From assembly GCA_964188305.1 (NCBI GenBank), contig OZ076901.1: a stretch of DNA of 64,000 nucleotides. One strand, written 5' to 3'. A program made the translations under genes and the position numbers. The notes under the pieces were generated by a model. It was given only the letters and a program-made list of their open reading frames with translations. It was not told where the DNA came from and did no database searches. The stretch is from Podarcis bocagei (lineage: Eukaryota). The first letter of the stretch is position 1. Each line of letters starts with the position of its first letter. Positions 2,809 to 61,132 of this stretch are shown here, one piece after another.

Positions 2809-4586
2809 TCAGATGGACATAGTCTGGGACATTTCAAAGAGCAGACAATAGGCTATGTCCCACTTTGGACTGAGAAAAAGAGAGCTTGGTTCTAGCTCTT
2901 CGACGGTGGCTTTTATCCAGCACAGGTAACAGGAAAAAACTCTTGAATGCATAATTAGCAGAACTCACTTCCAATAGATGTGGGTTGTCTGCTGGCTTAG
3001 ATGGCTTTCAAATGGGATTGGCCATGTTCATGAGTGATGGATATATCAGCAGCTGTTTGCTTATTTATCACATATATATAGCAGCTACTTCCTGCAAAGG
3101 CGTCTAAGCTGTTGGCTATGACAACTCAATGGAACCTTCCGATTATACCCAGGTTAGTCATATTCGAAGCTGACATTAATAGACGAAGTTGACATTAATA
3201 GACATGGCTAACGTAGGTCCATTCATTGCAACTGATCCACTCTGAAAAGAAGAAGCTAGCTGGAGACAACCCTTCCATTGTTGGAGATAGTTTGCCACTG
3301 AACTAAATGCTACTTCCTCAGGCTATTGCCTTCATGTTCTGGTTGTGAATATCCCAGAGGCATCTATCAGCCCACTGTTATGAAGCAGGATGCAAGGCCA
3401 GATGGGCCTTTGATGGGTCCAGCAAGGCTCTTCTTAGGATATAACCATCTAGGTATTTGCCAAACCCTACAACACCAGCATTTCCCAATTCGGTGCTCTC
3501 CAGAGTTTGTTGGATTACAATTCCAAGTAGGCCACGGCCAATGGTCAGAGAGGACAAAAGTTGTAGTCCAACAACATTCAGAGGTGCCATCATGGGGAAG
3601 GCTGTCTTAGGAGCTCCTCCCCCCCCCCCATCCCCCAAATCCATCAGGAAAGGGCAAAAGAGAAGAAAACTTACTGTCCACTCTCGCTTGTTACATCTAC
3701 GAAGACCTTGATCCTCATTCTGAACGCAGGACCCGAGTGAGACACCATAAAACAGAGAGGTTACTTTTGCTGCTCTTTGTCTAGGCTAGAACTAGTGCGT
3801 TCCTTACCTACTGCTGTTGCTTTCTCTACAGCAATCACAGAAGGCTCTACAGGGCTAGTGGCATGGCAGGGAGACAAAGGGAGCAGCAAGAACAGAGGGA
3901 GGCCCACCCAGCTCTATTGACACTCCACCTCCACTCCTGCCTTTCTGGCCTTGTTCACAGAGGGGTCCTATAACCCCAAATGCTCCTCTTCCAACCTTTC
4001 GAGAAAACACCTGGAAGCAGTCTCCCCAAAGCCTTCATCATAAGTTGCTTGGCACAAACGTTTGCCAGACTTGATGCAGGAAAGAGGTCTCTTGTGCAGT
4101 TTCCCAGGCTGATGTGGCCATGGAGCAGGGATAAAAGGCATCTTGGTCAATATCAAAGTCCTGCCACCAGACTGACAGCAGACCTTTATGAGCAGCAATG
4201 AGCTAAAGAGATTGGCACATGAGGGACTGGTCAGTTTCAGTCTCTTGTTTTCCCCCAGTCTAAATTCAGTTTGCCACATTTGCTAACCATTTTGAGATTT
4301 TCTTTTTCTTTTCTTTTTAAAAGAAACTCACAAAGATTTGCCAGCATTTTAGTGGACACTTCTCCTAATGTATACATTTCCACTAATATGCTGCATTTCT
4401 GTATCAATATTTTTTGCTAATATATGCACTTTCATGCACACTATTCCCTATTATATGCAGTTTTCTACACATTTGGGGGTTGGAGAAGTGCGTTGTCAAA
4501 TTCAAAGTGTGAATTTCAAAACAGCTGCATTTCCACCTGTGTACTGTTTCGGGGCATGCAAATAAGGTAAGTTTGCATCTAAATTG

Positions 4587-4612: not shown

Positions 4613-7259
4613 GATCTATCCAGTGGCTCAGATTGTTACCTCCCTTCCCCCAGGTCAAATTTGACATGTGGGTGGTGCCATGTACCTGTCAATCACCACA
4701 AGGCCTTGCAATGATCTTTGCAAGATCCGACAGCATTTATAAGCTAATTCAAAGAAGAATTATTATTTTCTCTTAATCTCTTCCAGGGCAGCAGTTGCAC
4801 CTGTCTTTAGGGGAATCAATAAGCAGTGTGCAAAGAGCTGTACCCTCTGCACCCCCCAGATCACAGAGAAGCTGCTGACCATGTATCACAATGCCCATCA
4901 TCCAGTGCTTTCAAACCCCATCTCACTTACTCTCCCTCTGCTTCGGTGTCTTTGTTCTCAACCTCACTCAGTATGACTTGCCACTTGCAACTATACTCTG
5001 TTGCAAACTTGTGCCCCCATATCTGGCAAATTCTGGCAATCACAGCATTGATGCCAAGTGCACAGCTGTGGAGAGACAATGCAAAAATAAATAAATAAAT
5101 TACAGCTCCCCAAACAAACACTTCCATGCCTTTTGCTACAGGGGCTGATTTCCTGAGCCTCTGCCTGTCTTGCAGTATTTCATCTTAGGCTTCCCTCACT
5201 GTTACAATGCAAAGCTGAACACCTTTGGGCTAAATTAGAGGTGATGTGTACTGTTTGGTGATTTGCACATCTGTCTGGGTCTGGCTGCAGGTTTTAGGGA
5301 GCCTGGTCCAACTGTCCGTTGGTGGGCCATGCTTACTTGGAGGTGAGCAGCAGTGGTTTGAGCTGCACCAGATAGCTTTGTCTAGCCACCATTTTGATTC
5401 CCCCTATTACCCCCCAATGGCCTGCTATTCTATGGTGTTCTGAAAAGTTAACATGGCAGCTAGACCCAGCCAAGTGTGCCCGTGCAGAAAAAGAGATATC
5501 TTATAGGACATTCGCTGCAGACATTGGCAGCAGGCCCTGATGAATTGCTGGAGCCCTGGCTACTGCCCTAGCATGCCAGAGGCTGACAGCAGCCTTGTGT
5601 CTGTCCAATTCAGATATAAGAAGTAGGATACATTTTATATTTCAAGAAGGGGTACTTGAGTGAGTGAATAGATATGAAACCTCCACACTCCTTTAGTCTT
5701 ATCTCCCTGCCCTCCATCACCACATTTGACTAGGTTTTACACATAAGTGGCACCAGGCTTTGCAACTTTCCCCTCTCTTGACAGGATTCCTGTGTCCTTA
5801 ACAGCTGCCTGGCTGACAAAAATTCAACAAGGGAAAGGTATTCTCTGCCTGGACCATGTCCATACCCATAGCAATTTCTTTCACAATGACAAGGCAGTGG
5901 TCCAAATGATGGAAGTGGACTCAGTGGACTTTGTGATGGAGCAGAGACTGGACCCTGGACAGGACTCAGGGCACTGGCTCAGAGTTCAACCACAACAGTT
6001 TCAGGACCATGGATAACAACCCTGCATATGATTGTAGGCAGGAACAAGTTGCCTCAGCACTGGTCTGCTGCAACCACCACAGATTTAGTCAGATTAATGC
6101 TCCACCTTTTGCGCCCTTTGGTGGAGTAATTGGCTCTTTCTAGGTGGCAAGGCTTTGGGTGGTGGAGACTTGGTCCATGGATACTCTGCAGGGCTTTCTT
6201 GATCCTCTGTTGTCCATTCTTCAAAGTTTCTAGGCTATGGGATGCTAAACTGTGGTCCTTCAGATGCTGTTGGGCATCAACTTTCATCATCCCGACCATT
6301 GGCCATGGCAGTTGGCACTGAGATGGCCAGCTAAATCCCACTTCTCAACACTGTGAGCCTCTCCAGAATCTCTTGCTGTGTGCTCTTGGCTTGGCCTATT
6401 AGGACAGACCCTGAAGAAGTGGTGGCTTTTATATGCACACACCTTTCTTCTTTGTGTTTGGTTTTGCAACTTCTTGACTTTCCAACCACCTTAGATAACT
6501 GTACAGCCTGGAATCCTGAACTTCAGAAGCCTCTCTAACCTCTCTCAATGCAGCTTTTTGCTGGATTCCTTCTCACCCATCTCCCTTGAGTATCCTCTTG
6601 CTCTGCTCAGATCCCAGAGCTGGCAGAACTGGCTGAGAACAGAGGCAATGCTCTTGGCTCTAAGCTCTCATGTGACCTCCCCCAACACAAGTACTCCTTT
6701 CCTCCCCATCTCACAACCAACCTCACCCTAGGCAATCACCAGACCAATTTCAAGTGGTGAGCCAAGTACTTTCTTCTCTGCCTCACCCATCCACTTAGAA
6801 AACTTCAAAACCCTCCTCTCACTCTCCCCCCCCAAAGAATACAGAAGCCCTGTCTCCAGAGCAAAGCTCCTGCCCACCCTCCTGTCCTTCCCTCCCCTCT
6901 GCCGTACAAAGCAAAAGAGGGAGGCAGGCCATGCTGCCACGAGCTACATGCACAAAGCGCAAGGCAAAAAGCTGGGTTCAGCTCTTGTTCTCTTTGAACA
7001 GGCAACACCAAAGGGGGAAACCATCCACTGCAAGGAGAGGAACATGCAGGTCCATGGCAAGGAGAAAGAGGGGAGGGGGAAAGATAGGATGCAAAGGGGA
7101 GTGGGGAAGCCATTCCACAAAAGGGGGGGGAGGAGGAGGAAAGAGACAGACATGAAGCCAGAAATCAACCGAGAGAGGAAGGACGGAAAAAAACGGTGCT
7201 TTGCTTTTGTGTACCTTGAGGCCAGAATCTGAGGGGGGAAAGGCCTACAGTGTCATGCG

Positions 7260-7403
7260 CTAGCATAAGTTAGCCTGGATGGTTGCGTACTCGACAAGGT
7301 CTCCGCCAGCATGGATCGAAGTCCTGGGGCTGGGTGACGTCGCCAGAGCGGAGGTGTCCAACTCTGCGTATTGGACGTCGGAGTCCTTGCTGTTGCCAGA
7401 GTT
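7260..7403 (-). CDS. NECTIN1: Nectin-1 beta terminal exon with tandem ITIM-like motifs
   Basis: Long pyrimidine tract + tctccag acceptor, phase 0, matching the donor at 15147; 144 nt, locally CpG-rich like coding sequence. Encodes NSGNSKDSDVQYAELDTSALATSPSPRTSIHAGGDLVEYATIQANLC*. The link to exon 3 is inferred from phase and position. Confidence 0.8.
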   Translation of the reverse strand, partial: NSGNSKDSDVQYAELDTSALATSPSPRTSIHAGGDLVEYATIQANLC

Positions 7404-13400: not shown

Positions 13401-15146
13401 TGAACCAGCAGGACTCTTTAAAGCCCAGCTCTTTGCTCTCCTCATTTACCAAGTCACATGATGATCTGCATGGTGCACACTGTTGTTTGGGATGTGAATT
13501 GGTGCCCTCCCTGCACCATTTGAAGCTTGTTGTCTAGGGCAGGGGTACCCATGTGCCGCCTTGAAGACTCCAACTCCCATCAGCCCCTGCCACCATGTCC
13601 AATGATGGGGGGAGTTGCGTTCTAATAATGTCTGGAGGGCACCACATTGGCTACCCTCTGATCTGTGGCTCTGGATCACCTGCAAAGCAGCCAGAATGAC
13701 ACAGTTTGGGGTGAACCGTCACCTCCATCACCTTCCTCAAGGGGCCCACCTGGGCTGGTCTCAGGCTTTGAATGTGCAGCTTTGGGAAGCACCGAGCAGC
13801 GGTCTCCCTTACATATGGGTCTTGCGAGCCCATCATGGGCTAGGGAGAAAAAGCTACCTTCCCCCTCCTGTTCTGTATTCCTCTCCCTCCTCCAAAGTGG
13901 CCTCTTGCCTGCCTCTCCACTCAACTCGCTTCGCCTTCGGTGACCCCCCACTAATCTCCCTGCTGTCGCTCCTGCTTTGCATTTACCGTCTTCCTGCCTG
14001 CAGCTGAAACAGATTCATACAATATAAGGGCTTTCAGGGGAAAAAAGTGCTGTCCTCATTTAGCAGTCAAGCACCAGCATGCTCTGCTGGCAGATCACCC
14101 ATCTGCCATGGCATCCGCCTGCCCTCCCTCTCTCTCCATGCTCTGTGTGGACATCTTCCCAGTCTCGGGCATGCTGGCTGGTGGGAAGCCCTATGCTTCG
14201 CCACAGGCAAAGCTCCCCCTTGGGAACCTGCACACAGGCCCCCTGAATCATTGTTGCTGGCCTCCTCAATGGTCTGAGTCCTGCAAGAGGGATGAAACCA
14301 GAGCCAACAGCAAAGAGCAGCAGCCGTTGACTCTGGACCTGCCCTCTCCCCCTTTCTCATCTGGTCCCATGGCATAGTCCAGCATCCCAAAGGGGCTACT
14401 GCTCTCCTTTCATATTGCACCACCACCATTTTCTCCCAAGCTGATACCCAGGCAATCCACCCAGGCCCTGAAATGGTTTGCAATTCCCATCTCACAGAGT
14501 TGGAGAAGTGCTCACAGGATGTACCACAACAGCCATTGCTTGCTATGAGTGACAGGCTTAAGATCATACAAAGAAAGACCTGTGGTTTTTTGCTTCTCAC
14601 CCAGAAAAGGAATCATCATGCAGCAAGGGGTTCTTGATGGGAAGTTACCTTTTGGGGATGAGTGGGTGGGAGAGACCTAATAGCTGAGGGAGTCAGACTG
14701 GACCACCAGCTGACTACCAGGGTGCTTAAGCTGTATGTCAGGAATGGGGCACCAGTTGCCCTCCAGTTGCTTTTGGACTCCAACTCCCATCAGCCCCAGC
14801 CAACATGGTCAATGGTCAGGGTCTATGAGAGTTGGGAGTCCAGCATCCAGTTCCCTATCTCTGATATATGAAGCAGCATTCCACACTGCATACAAAAAAA
14901 AAAAAAATATTTAGATGAGACATTTCCTTCTGAGAGCAAGGAAGACCTCCTCTTGAATCAGGAATGGAAACATCTATGGCACACCAGATGTTGTCAGACT
15001 CCAACTCCCATCAGCCCCAATCAGTATGACCAATGGTCAAGGAGAATGGGTGTTGTTGTCCAGCTGTGCCTGGAGGAATGGAGGATCCCCATCCCTGATC
15101 CATGGAAAGGTCCAGATTGTGGACAGGCAGTGGCCCTCATCCTTAC

Positions 15147-15260
15147 CATCTTGTCGGAGTGAGGGGTTGGCTCGGTGGCTGCCATGTCGTAGTAGGGGGG
15201 TTGTGGTGGCAACTTCTGGATCTCTTCCTCTGGCTCCTTCATGTTGTCCAAGTGCACGAC
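15147..15260 (-). CDS. NECTIN1: Nectin-1 beta exon 3
   Basis: ccacag acceptor, phase 0; ATG|gtaagg donor, phase 0; 114 nt. Encodes VVHLDNMKEPEEEIQKLPPQPPYYDMAATEPTPHSDKM, compared with human beta VVHLD...EEEDLQKLSLQPPYYDL as recalled. Confidence 0.92.
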
Positions 15261-15657: not shown

Positions 15658-15748
15658 CTGGATATCCTCTGCTGTTAGGTGGCTTTTCATCTCCTGCTTC
15701 CGCTTGGGAGGTGGGGGAGCAGGTTTGTGGGAGGGGGGAAGGTCAATC
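15658..15748 (-). CDS. NECTIN1: Nectin-1 beta exon 2 (proline-rich)
   Basis: ttcctgcag acceptor, phase 2 (CT+G=Leu); CAG|gtacct donor, phase 0. Encodes IDLPPSHKPAPPPPKRKQEMKSHLTAEDIQ. Confidence 0.9.
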
Positions 15749-17060: not shown

Positions 17061-17208
17061 AGATCATTGTCGGTGTCAGAGCGGCCCTTTTGCTGTCGCC
17101 TGTAGACAATGAAGACAGTCACAGCCACGCTGATAATGAGGGCAGCAGCAGCAACGACGCCCAGGATTCCAAAAATGCCTCCTGGTATCCCTTGGGGCAA
17201 TGGCTTAT
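17061..17208 (-). CDS. NECTIN1: Nectin-1 beta isoform exon 1 (alternative TM exon)
   Basis: ttacag acceptor, phase 1 (same as the alpha exon); CT|gtgagt donor. Encodes (D)KPLPQGIPGGIFGILGVVAAAALIISVAVTVFIVYRRQQKGRSDTDND(L), resembling human beta/HIgR EKPRPQ...FFLYNRQQK as recalled. Not represented in the ORF track. Confidence 0.92.
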
Positions 17209-34575: not shown

Positions 34576-34809
34576 NNNNNNNNNNNNNNNNNNNNNNNNN
34601 NNNNNNNNNNNNNNNNNNNNNNNNNNNNNNNNNNNNNNNNNNNNNNNNNNNNNNNNNNNNNNNNNNNNNNNNNNNNNNNNNNNNNNNNNNNNNNNNNNNN
34701 NNNNNNNNNNNNNNNNNNNNNNNNNNNNNNNNNNNNNNNNNNNNNNNNNNNNNNNNNNNNNNNNNNNNNNNNNNNNNNNNNNNNNNNNNNNNNNNNNNNN
34801 NNNNNNNNN
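34576..34809. other. Assembly gap
   Basis: Run of N. Confidence 1.
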
Positions 34810-35866: not shown

Positions 35867-36103
35867 NNNNNNNNNNNNNNNNNNNNNNNNNNNNNNNNNN
35901 NNNNNNNNNNNNNNNNNNNNNNNNNNNNNNNNNNNNNNNNNNNNNNNNNNNNNNNNNNNNNNNNNNNNNNNNNNNNNNNNNNNNNNNNNNNNNNNNNNNN
36001 NNNNNNNNNNNNNNNNNNNNNNNNNNNNNNNNNNNNNNNNNNNNNNNNNNNNNNNNNNNNNNNNNNNNNNNNNNNNNNNNNNNNNNNNNNNNNNNNNNNN
36101 NNN
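35867..36103. other. Assembly gap
   Basis: Run of N. Confidence 1.
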
Positions 36104-58035: not shown

Positions 58036-58580
58036 CTAAACATACCACTCCTTTTTGGAAATAAAAGACCCGTCGTTCTGAGAGACCATGTTATCGGCTA
58101 TGTCCAGCTGCTCGGGGTCGTACTGGAAACCGAGTGTCCTCTCGTCGTAGGCCTCCGAGCGGGCCTCGCCCTCGTCCACCGTGAAGTAAGGCCGCTTGGA
58201 GTCGTCTTCGTACTTGCCAGGCGGCCCCCCGCCCAGCTTGCGGTCCCCTCCGGCGCCGTCCTCCTCCTCGTCCTCGTAGCTGTGCCCCCCCAGCGGGCCG
58301 GCCTTCTTCTCGTCGTCCGAGTCGTCGGGGTACTGGAGGTTCTGTGCCATGGGCGGGTGGTGCTGTGGGATGCCGGCTTTGCTGTAGCCATTGCCGTAGA
58401 CGTGCTTCTTGGTGCTGTAGTCGCCCTTGAAGGTGTGGCGCCGGTGGCGGAGCACGACAAAAACCACCACGGCCAGCACCACGACCAAGGAGACTCCGCC
58501 CACCACGCCCCCAATCACAGCGGTGGGGATGGTCGACTGCGCCACGGATGTGCCCGGTGGAGACGGGGTGTAGGGGAATT
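58036..58580 (-). CDS. NECTIN1: Nectin-1 alpha isoform terminal coding exon (juxtamembrane, TM helix, cytoplasmic tail with C-terminal PDZ-binding motif)
   Basis: Pyrimidine tract + cag acceptor (58583-58581), phase 1. Reads (E)FPYTPSPP...VIGGVVGGVSLVVVLAVVVFVVL RHRRHTFKGDYSTKKHVYGNGYSKAGIPQHHPPMAQNLQYPDDSDDEKKAGPLGG...DPEQLDIADNMVSQNDGSFISKKEWYV*, matching the nectin-1 alpha tail as recalled. Confidence 0.97.
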
Positions 58581-61132
58581 CTGGGTAGGAAAAGACAGAT
58601 GGAAGGGGGAACAAGCGTCAGTCTGTGAGGAACGGCCACACCATGCTTTAAGAATTTAAAGAAAGCAAATTCAAAAAAAATATATATCGGGGAGGGTGGG
58701 GGGGTGGGGAGATGAGGAGAAGGGAAAAGGGAGGGAAAAGTCAGGGGAGGGGGGGTGGCTACCTACGGAGGCCCTCCGCTCAGCCTCTGTGCGTCGGATT
58801 AAGCCTCAAAGTCCGCTTCTGTCAGCGCAAGCAAGTTAGCATCATGCATCAGCCCAGCACATCGGAACATCCTGACTCCATGTTCCTGTCAGAGCCAGGA
58901 GCTCTTAAATGCCAACTGCATGCACCCACCCCACCCCAGGGAAACATCTTTAGGTGTTGGGGACCAGAGCTGAAGACACCGTGCTCCTCAAATTTCCCTT
59001 CAGAATTCCACCCCACATTTTTTTCCACCCCTATCCTGAGCACTCAAAGCACATCTGCCGAATATTCGCAGAATATTTGACAGTGGGTGATCATCAGGCT
59101 TCTGTTGCTGTTTGGTACGTGTTTGATAAAGTTTCCCGCTTGGAGATGTTAAGATCCCATGAAAAATCGAGGCAGGTGGATAGAAGCCGCCGAGCCCTAA
59201 AAACGCAGCGTCCTATTTGCAATGCAATTTTGAGTGATTCTTGCTTCGAGTTTGCAATTTTGCAGGCAGTTTATGCATTTAAAATTTATATACCGCTGGG
59301 TTAAAGAAAACCTCAAAGCAGTTTACAAAGAGAATAAAACAGTAAGGTTATTGGTATTATTATTATTATTATTTTAAAAAATCTTTCAAAGAAGAGCAGC
59401 TATTTGCAAAACGGCAAATTCCGACATGTTGTCCATTTTGGTTTTGGGTGGGTGGATTTCTATCTGTGACTATTTGCTTCAGCTCAATGGGCACCCAACT
59501 TGGGAATCAGCTCTGGTCTCTAGAGCTTGCCTGGAATAAGACCCCTGTGTGTGAGCTTTTCGGGGATAAACAGCAGGCACACCTGAAAAGGTGAAAAGAG
59601 AGGCACCCTCTCCCACTACACTCTTCCTCCCAAAGAGACCCCCCATTCTTTCACAGAAAGGTAACATTTCATTAGATGTGGCTTTGCCCCACAGATGTCC
59701 AAATCATGCCATTATTCCTCTTTGAAAATTGGGGAAGAGAGATTGTGTGAGCCAGACACCCAAGTGGTAGGATGTGGTATTACGTCCTCTTCTAGCTCGT
59801 CCTAAAAATTTGCGAGAGGCTTTGGAAAATATTAATGTGATGCAATCCATTAAACCAGCACTGAAAGGAAGTTCCATCAGGGCACCTACTGTATTCAGCA
59901 GGGATGTGTTGCATTTATTTAAATAATGATAATCTGCACCAAGTTAACCCCATATCTGCACCCAGAGAGAAAGCCCCTGCAACCTGTATGAGTTATCCAT
60001 GTTTCGCTTACACCTTTTTATTTACTGATTTTGTAAAATCCGGCACTCAGGGGTAGACTGCGTGTGCATATGGAGGCTTCATTTTTTTTTTTTTTTTTTG
60101 CTGCCGAGTCCTACATCCCTCCATGGAGTTGACTGGCCAAAACCATTGGTGCCAAGACAGTGGTCACCTTTGCACCCGGGCTGGGGTGGGGGAGAGCAAA
60201 CTCCCTAAGTTAATGACACCTCATGAGAAGCAGGGGCTTCTCACAAATTTATGCCCTGCCAGTTTCACTATGTTGACCCTGAGTTCTTCCGGAGGGAAGG
60301 GAATGGTTTCCTACCAGCAACCCTCTCCCACTGCTCGCAAACTTACAAACCTCCACGGCACACGATGTCATCCATTTCACACCGAAGCACCAATTCCCAT
60401 CCCATCTTCTCTCTCTTCACAATAGAGGAAGTATTCTTTTATTCCTCCACGAAATGGAAAAATGAGTGCGACAAGGCAGACCGGCCAAGGCCATGCAAGA
60501 ACTCAGAACAGGGCGGGGGTGAAGTTGGGGTTAGACGCCTGGCTTTGAGCCAAAGGCATTATCGTTGCTGCATATTAGCCCAAGCAAATGCTGGACGGAA
60601 AGAGAGAGAAAGAAGGAAAGAAAGAACGAAGGAAGGACAGAGAGAGGGGGACCACTGTATCTTGTTTGGTGTATCCAAATTTAAGATGAATGCCAGAATC
60701 CTACAGCTGAAAAGCCTCCCCACCCCCTCCCCACAAACCATAGGCTCACCTGCATCTGTCAACCCCACCAGTATATTTTCTCATCTCCCCCCCCAAAAAA
60801 ATCAAGTTGTTTTCACTGCATGTTCCAGTCTAGAAACCTTGCCCTCCAGATCCCACCACATGGGGCTGCGATTGCTCGTTGGTGCACTCTGCAATCTGCT
60901 CAGAAGTCCTCTCTCCTCTCTATTGCACCATGTGAGTTGGGTGTAGCAAATTCAGTCCTGCACTCCCAAGAGCCCTAGACAGGGAACATTTGTGGGGAGA
61001 GGGTGCATCCCCCCCAAACAGAGCACTCCAAAGGACCGAGCAAGCTTTCCATTGCAGTTGTAAGGAGGGTGCTGCCAGGGACCGAGCAAAGGAGCCCATC
61101 TCCCACCAGGGCAGACCTGCACAACGCGAACA

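Follow-up and report, generated by a model that had tools for sequence, protein, structure and literature searches.

Nectin-1, a major cell-adhesion molecule, also serves herpes simplex and pseudorabies viruses as their main entry receptor. The beta branch of the protein is treated mainly as the form without the afadin motif. Human nectin-1 beta (HIgR, 458 aa) shares the beta transmembrane exon, beta exons 2 and 3 and the PPYYD[L/M] stretch with the form that ends in a fourth beta exon, b4, the subject of this report. E/A-x-Y-V is absent from human beta and its mammalian equivalents, as it is from the b4 form. The difference lies at the very end: short beta stops a few residues past exon 3 (V-R...), whereas the b4 form gains about 47 residues and two ITIMs.

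Two ITIM-type motifs roughly 20-30 residues apart are found in the type I Ig-superfamily receptors PECAM-1, SIRP-alpha, MPZL1/PZR and CEACAM1-L. PECAM-1, SIRP-alpha, PZR and CEACAM1-L are tandem ITIM ligands of tandem-SH2 phosphatases, and two motifs about 20-30 residues apart suit tandem SH2 domains. The likeness of nectin-1 b4 to these receptors is at the level of motifs, and no homology of the b4 tail to other ITIM receptors was detected by protein search.

A closer parallel comes from the nectin family itself. CD155/PVR (nectin-like 5) has transmembrane isoforms with alternative tails, and only the alpha isoform has an ITIM. c-Src phosphorylates this motif, and SHP-2 is recruited by it; the alpha tail also binds mu1B for basolateral sorting (PMC7037299). 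Like the b4 form, CD155 alpha has no afadin motif (PMC7037299; PMC7286890), and PVR has been called a recent, fast-evolving branch (PMC7286890). CD155 is described with a single ITIM, whereas nectin-1 b4 has two at a fixed spacing in all jawed-vertebrate groups sampled. The protein search brought up no similarity between the b4 and CD155 tails. In CEACAM1-L an alternatively spliced long tail carries ITIMs that bind SHP-1 and/or SHP-2 (PMC5387134).

Results

The beta branch of NECTIN1 in a lizard genome

The window analysed here is a stretch of 64,000 nucleotides of Podarcis bocagei (GCA_964188305.1, contig OZ076901.1). Its minus strand holds the 3' half of NECTIN1, with the ectodomain exons lying outside. 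Runs of N occur at 34576-34809 and 35867-36103. The main coding features are listed below, with a slash marking exon borders.

58036..58617, minus strand: alpha-specific last coding stretch (transmembrane segment, tail, KKEWYV, stop), delimited as a stop-free stretch (58617-58039) plus stop and not by an acceptor
17061..17208, minus strand: b1, beta exon 1, entered in phase 1; encodes ..DKPLPQG.., the transmembrane helix and YRRQQKGRSDTDND; donor CT/gtgagt
15658..15748, minus strand: b2, beta exon 2; encodes (L)IDLPPSHKPAPPPPKRKQEMKSHLTAEDIQ; donor CAG/gtacct
15147..15260, minus strand: b3, beta exon 3; encodes VVHLDNMKEPEEEIQKLPPQPPYYDMAATEPTPHSDKM; donor ATG/gtaagg
7260..7403, minus strand: b4, beta exon 4, 47 codons plus TAG, defined by translation, splice sites and conservation

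The alpha tail ends in ...SFISKKEWYV with its stop at 58036, an E-x-Y-V end of the afadin-binding type. The three beta-specific exons b1-b3 sit about 41 kb downstream of the alpha last exon. At its acceptor side b1 reads ttacag/AT AAG..., and b3, which encodes ...PPQPPYYDMAATEPTPHSDKM, ends AAG ATG/gtaagg in phase 0. Splice phases are compatible throughout b1-b4 in the window, and tblastn with lizard, snake and bird beta isoforms places the four exons there in order. The hydrophobic transmembrane helix in b1 is followed by RRQQK; with these basic residues on the inner side of the membrane, the beta tail is cytoplasmic. An orthologue with an identical tail (P0209) has V-set, C2-set_2 and Ig_3 domains, that is, a type I arrangement with an Ig-like ectodomain. 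Pfam searches of the tail returned nothing except a sub-threshold transmembrane-segment match.

The beta exons of the window are nearly identical to the Podarcis lilfordi model P0253, a 'hypothetical predicted protein'. The C-terminal part of P0253 matches a stop-free stretch at 14063-14356 (minus strand) within the b3-b4 intron, to which the model joins b3 instead of b4. We saw this stretch conserved nowhere else, and the join is therefore probably an ab initio mis-prediction.

The b4 exon carries two exact ITIMs

The minus strand around the start of b4 reads ...tgctctctcatctccag/AAC TCT GGC..., so that the exon begins at 7403, behind a pyrimidine-rich AG acceptor and in phase 0. Translation of 7403-7260 gives NSGNSKDSDVQYAELDTSALATSPSPRTSIHAGGDLVEYATIQANLC, followed by a TAG stop at 7262-7260. 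The gap from b3 to b4 (15147 to 7403) is 7.7 kb. The original prediction of a phase-0 exon with a strong acceptor at this distance from beta exon 3 is borne out by the window sequence.

The predicted pair of motifs is present in the translation as well: ITIM-1 is VQYAEL and ITIM-2 is VEYATI, with their tyrosines at residues 12 and 39 of the b4 peptide, 27 apart, the kind of spacing typical of tandem-SH2 ligands that had been claimed. VEYATI had been described as merely ITIM/ITSM-like; the motif stands, but its fit to (S/I/V/L)xYxx(I/V/L) is exact, as is that of VQYAEL. The peptide ends in ANLC and not in E/A-x-Y-V, in agreement with the predicted absence of an afadin motif. In this the b4-terminated isoform is unlike the afadin-binding nectin isoforms, represented by the alpha exon of the window with its KKEWYV end and by the beta transmembrane exons of relatives, which can end ...CPKEQYV. 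The suspicion that automated gene models already contain the exon was correct, one example being Hemicordylus isoform X4. We conclude that b4 is a genuine coding exon of the NECTIN1 beta branch.

Within the six-frame translation of the window the ITIM consensus occurs at a frequency of 1.3 per 1000 codons, and two stop-free tandem ITIM-consensus pairs are found, one of which is b4. Since such a pair is expected about once per window by chance, its significance rests on context and conservation.

Conservation of b4 from sharks to primates

Searched without a profile against 1.84 billion representative proteins, the 47-residue b4 peptide gave 35 matches at E<=0.001. Among the 23 of these matched sequences that were examined, all were beta-type nectin-1 tails bar one repetitive protein. 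Named matches include arapaima 'nectin-1 isoform X7', shad, tree shrew and rabbit 'nectin-1 isoform X2' (498 aa). When the rabbit and corn-snake tails were used as queries in region searches, full-length nectin-1 models with a b4-type tail came up. Such models exist for mammals (capuchin, horse, beaver, guinea pig, rat, hamster, Peromyscus, sloth), squamates (snakes, Hemicordylus, Anolis, Pogona, geckos), birds (passerines including zebra finch and crows), frogs, cartilaginous fishes (catshark, bamboo shark, skates, rays) and ray-finned fishes (bichir, bowfin and many teleosts). In Hemicordylus capensis isoform X4 the 47-residue peptide is identical to that of the window, and Anolis carolinensis X5 differs from it at two residues. 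The Hemicordylus gene spans 180 kb. A Varanus komodoensis protein (P0244) also has the tail encoded by b1-b4, yet its public record bears the name '4-hydroxy-3-methylbut-2-en-1-yl diphosphate synthase (flavodoxin)', which is evidently a wrong label.

In an alignment of 18 species the invariant columns are D7, Y12-A-E-L-D-T17, L20 and V37-E-Y-A-T-I-Q43. They sit within or beside the two motifs, while the linker drifts, especially in mammals. Motif statistics were drawn from 65 distinct tandem segments from 104 proteins; the selecting pattern fixed the tyrosine, the +1 residue and the class at +3, so that the informative features are position -2, the flanks and the spacing. ITIM-2 is VEYATI in 62/65 distinct segments and ITIM-1 is [V/I]-[Q/H/Y/R]-YAEL in 64/65. 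Position -2 is V or I in 64/65 segments for ITIM-1 and V in 65/65 for ITIM-2, and the distance between the tyrosines is 26, 27 or 28 in all 65. Two fish fragments have YAVL.

Both tyrosines are kept in capuchin, horse, rat, hamster, rabbit, sloth, sheep and tree shrew; the one mammalian exception noted is the badger (Meles meles) model P0043. There H replaces the tyrosine of the first ITIM (..DIHHAELETSAL..) and VEYATI is kept, which could reflect a lineage-specific loss of ITIM-1 or an assembly error.

Codon comparisons by the Nei-Gojobori method among lizard, sparrow, mudskipper, tree shrew and shark gave dS of 0.64-3.1 and dN/dS of 0.09-0.39, which indicates purifying selection on b4 at the protein level. 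Identity to catshark is 71% for b1, 77% for b2, 66% for b3 and 81% for b4; in this comparison b4 is conserved as well as the other beta exons, or better. Conservation removes chance as an explanation of the motif pair. The comparisons indicate that b4 is an ancient, selected feature, kept in all jawed-vertebrate groups sampled.

The original prediction had named orthologues, dN/dS and the two tyrosines as its tests, and these came out in its favour, with the exon found in squamates, birds and beyond. What did not survive is its framing of the alternative wiring of one ectodomain as a property of 'this lizard': conservation of the exon and of its two tyrosines extends over the jawed vertebrates, mammals among them. 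A lizard-specific innovation is ruled out by the mammal, bird, frog, shark and ray-finned-fish orthologues.

The b3-b4 junction and the short beta form

Many public automated gene models contain the b3-b4 junction; these models, together with splice-site conservation, are the basis for the junctions described here. A short-fragment search with exons 2-4 of the Hemicordylus isoform returned genome-derived models, with no junction-spanning transcript, and the Logan and ENA fragments examined were unspliced genomic ORFs.

Short mammalian models of 447-460 aa, such as those of mouse lemur, squirrel monkey, mouse and dog, depart from the b4 form right after b3, ending ..YHPL/VRTTEP.., ..YYPS/VRTTEA.. 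or ..YRPL/VRMAKP; a frog model ends ..CDQR/VRHI... The V-R start is what reading through a GTAAGG-type donor produces, and the b3 donor of the window, read through, gives V-R-M-R. Human-type beta can thus be understood as a read-through of b3, and the mammalian models suggest that the cloned human form is most simply an alternative to b3-b4 splicing. Long and short forms occur within the same lineages: capuchin at 493 aa (P0038) vs squirrel monkey at 460 aa (P0162), and rat X1 at 487 aa vs rat X2 at 448 aa. The statement that human beta stops shortly after PPYYDL without ITIMs therefore holds for the short form seen in mammalian models, but a long two-ITIM form coexists with it in mammals.

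A splice donor on the ITIM-2 tyrosine codon

In addition to its full-length reading, b4 contains an internal donor, and a further small exon lies downstream.

7285..7295, minus strand: internal (proximal) 5' splice site, GTCGA/GTACGC; the short b4 ends at 7291
3675..3719, minus strand: b5, an optional 45-nt microexon, ttcag/A ATG AGG ... GGA CA/gtaagt; encodes (E)MRIKVFVDVTSESG(Q)

The GT of the internal donor (break at 7291/7290) straddles two codons, taking its G from the end of Glu GAG and its T from the start of TAC, the tyrosine codon of ITIM-2. As a donor, GA/GTAC is weak. Many non-mammalian models share b4 only as far as ..GGDLVE and then continue into downstream exons. From this point Hemicordylus X3, Pogona, geckos and crows read TLESVTQRYRMRVIT; Anolis sagrei X2, geckos, crows and sparrow read MRIKVFVDVTSESGQ and then TLE.VTQRYRMRVIT; teleosts, gar and a stingray read ..TLGTVSKSYQPRLNM, ..TLGGVQKSC or ..TMEIAMKNYQTRTNT. 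The earlier description of b4 as a terminal exon is correct in that the stop lies in b4, but the exon is not simply terminal, the internal donor being used in many non-mammalian models.

GA/GTAY is kept in 4/4 non-mammals (lizard, sparrow, mudskipper, shark). In tree shrew (L003) and sheep (L005) the ITIM-2 codons are GAA TAY: E-Y is retained and the GT is gone. No single-ITIM-type model was seen among the mammalian models, with which the lost GT of these two species agrees.

The b5 peptide of the window recurs without change in models of Anolis, gecko, crow and sparrow. At the b5 position, gar and teleost models show a comparable hydrophobic peptide of the VGIVVIVDVKM type.

One last exon, two reading frames

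The last exon, b6 (TLE.VTQRYRMRVIT / ..CPKEQYV), was not found in the window by tblastn or regular-expression search, and presumably lies beyond window coordinate 1. Mapping of the sparrow locus L001 places all six exons, b1-b6, in order:

L001 4688: b1
L001 6684: b2
L001 7213: b3
L001 about 12227: b4
L001 14364: b5
L001 18797-19014: b6

Sparrow b6 lies 4.4 kb past the microexon. Spliced to b3 in phase 0 (frame A), it contributes 72 residues with the end ..SRAPYICPKEQYV; when the preceding exon is short b4 or b5 (phase 2, frame B), it yields TLESVTQRYRMRVIT and then a stop. The mudskipper locus has the same exon order as sparrow, with b6 at L002 43630-43866 and the end ..YPKEQSV. Beta transmembrane exons are followed by ..CPKEQYV in Hemicordylus X1, Pogona X1, Sceloporus, gecko, turtle and sturgeon models; frog models too have the end ..CPKEQYV, which in teleost X1 forms is ..KEQSV. 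The frame-B peptide varies among lineages in length and sequence, and therefore probably matters only as a truncation.

Judged from gene models and genomic sequence, the beta transmembrane segment of non-mammals serves three tails: an afadin-type end, a tandem-ITIM tail and a single-ITIM tail. The established view of beta as lacking the afadin motif, on which the original prediction had relied, accordingly holds for the b4-terminated form and is an oversimplification for non-mammals, where the same transmembrane exons also end ...CPKEQYV. In tree shrew and sheep the 6-10 kb downstream showed no homologue of b5 or b6; mammals may have lost the EQYV output and the single-ITIM one.

Sequence beyond the b4 stop

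7209..7220, minus strand: candidate distal 5' splice site, CTCAAG/GTACAC, 45 nt past the stop; its use would extend b4 to 7215
7209-7262, minus strand: post-stop conserved stretch, corresponding to sparrow L001 12368-12420, with equivalents in L002, L003, L004 and L005

Lizard and sparrow can be aligned for 45 nt beyond the stop, up to CTCAAG/GTAC, and the local alignment stops four bases after the GT. AG/GTAC occurs 16-45 nt past the stop in 6/6 species (lizard, sparrow, mudskipper, shark, tree shrew, sheep). Downstream of the b4 stop there is no AATAAA in the window, and the first ATTAAA is 6.1 kb past the stop, beyond the microexon. The two-ITIM mRNA probably splices onward at the candidate distal donor, with downstream exons as its 3'UTR. 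If this donor is used, the 'terminal' exon would be an internal one, and the 3'UTR would be spliced.

Discussion

We lean, on somewhat better than even chances, towards the reading that the ancient b4 tail is a splice-chosen, two-motif docking site for the SH2 domains of SHP-2 or SHP-1, engaged in a bidentate manner. The tail is built around [V/I]-x-Y-A-E-L-D-T and V-E-Y-A-T-I-Q, 26-28 residues apart. Both tyrosines would be phosphorylated, probably by Src-family kinases, and the tandem SH2 domains of either phosphatase could then bind the doubly phosphorylated pair in a bidentate manner. The nectin-1 ectodomain would thereby be coupled to phosphatase signalling instead of afadin and actin. 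Two exact ITIMs, the 26-28 spacing, the invariant hydrophobic residue at -2 and the invariant flanks together make up the signature of a bidentate tandem-SH2 ligand; judged from these motifs, the b4 tail could recruit SHP-1 or SHP-2.

The main rival is that YAEL and YATI serve mainly as YxxPhi sorting signals, bound by the mu subunits of AP-1B or AP-2 for basolateral targeting or endocytosis and not by a phosphatase. Both motifs do fit YxxPhi, and in CD155 only the alpha tail, in the same isoform that has the ITIM, binds mu1B for basolateral sorting (PMC7037299); it is this combination of ITIM and mu1B binding in one tail that makes sorting the foremost competitor. YxxPhi, however, needs no hydrophobic residue at -2, where V or I is nevertheless found in 64/65 and V in 65/65 segments, and it requires neither a fixed 26-28 spacing nor invariant D-T and Q flanks. 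We consider a mainly sorting role unlikely, and as sorting and phosphatase docking are not mutually exclusive, the two may coexist. Somewhat less probable still is that the motifs, once phosphorylated, dock SH2 proteins of another kind (Csk, SHIP-1 or Src-family kinases, for example) in place of the tandem-SH2 phosphatases. pY-A-x-[L/I] is compatible with several SH2 classes. ITIM effectors differ among related receptors, the TIGIT ITIM being reported to recruit SHIP-1 (PMC7037299). The conserved 26-28 spacing of the two motifs suggests bidentate tandem-SH2 engagement instead, an argument that leans on the familiar examples of PECAM-1, SIRP-alpha and PZR.

A different kind of explanation would deny the peptide any role and treat b4 as a non-functional or regulatory 'poison' exon, whose stop truncates the protein and which is conserved because of elements acting in the RNA, for instance splice sites or 3'UTR signals. 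The conservation of post-stop sequence up to AG/GTAC, the two candidate donors in or near b4 and the lack of AATAAA past the stop in the window, with the first ATTAAA 6.1 kb away, would all fit such an exon. Yet many synonymous changes have accumulated (dS 0.64-3.1) with the protein kept under constraint (dN/dS 0.09-0.39), what stays invariant is amino-acid motifs, and mammals keep E-Y despite the change from GAG to GAA. We regard this explanation as very improbable.

Returning to b4 as a docking tail, the splice routes can be assembled into a wider scheme. Splicing of b3 to full b4 gives two ITIMs, as in gene models. Splicing of b3 to b4 cut at GA/GTAC, then through optional b5 to b6 in the shifted frame, gives one ITIM and a short unrelated end, a route seen in gene models and in the sparrow locus. 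In relatives, b3 joined directly to b6 (outside the window in Podarcis bocagei) gives the ...CPKEQYV end, an afadin-type PDZ ligand. Read-through of the b3 donor, as in mammalian models, gives the short beta cloned from human. We tentatively propose, with rather less than even confidence, that these routes form an ancient three-way splice switch, in which one ectodomain and transmembrane segment is joined to EQYV, to bidentate SHP-2-type docking or to a single-ITIM tail, the choice between two ITIMs and one being set at the donor lying over the Glu-Tyr codons, and with two reading frames in use in the last exon. In the two mammals examined, the tandem ITIM would have been kept, the internal donor lost and the short form produced by intron read-through added.

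The annotation of b4 is not new, since the exon is already in public automated models, one of them with an identical peptide. In the searchable literature (subscription-only papers being outside its scope) we found no link of nectin-1 (PVRL1, NECTIN1, HIgR) to ITIMs or to SHP-1/SHP-2, and the b4 peptide strings occur in no searchable paper. The statement in the original prediction that no functional description of an ITIM-bearing nectin-1 was known agrees with this search. To judge by its motifs, the long beta form of nectin-1 appears to belong to the ITIM-bearing Ig-superfamily adhesion receptors, as a member not described until now.

The full beta tail holds two of the most conserved short motifs of nectin-1, and both are exact ITIMs. 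Two codes overlap in this branch of the gene, with a 5' splice site on the ITIM-2 tyrosine codon and a last exon in two frames. The finding yields a testable hypothesis, that SHP-2 or SHP-1 docks on nectin-1 in a phosphorylation-dependent manner set by isoform choice. If true, this would align nectin-1 with CD155-alpha, PECAM-1 and CEACAM1-L.
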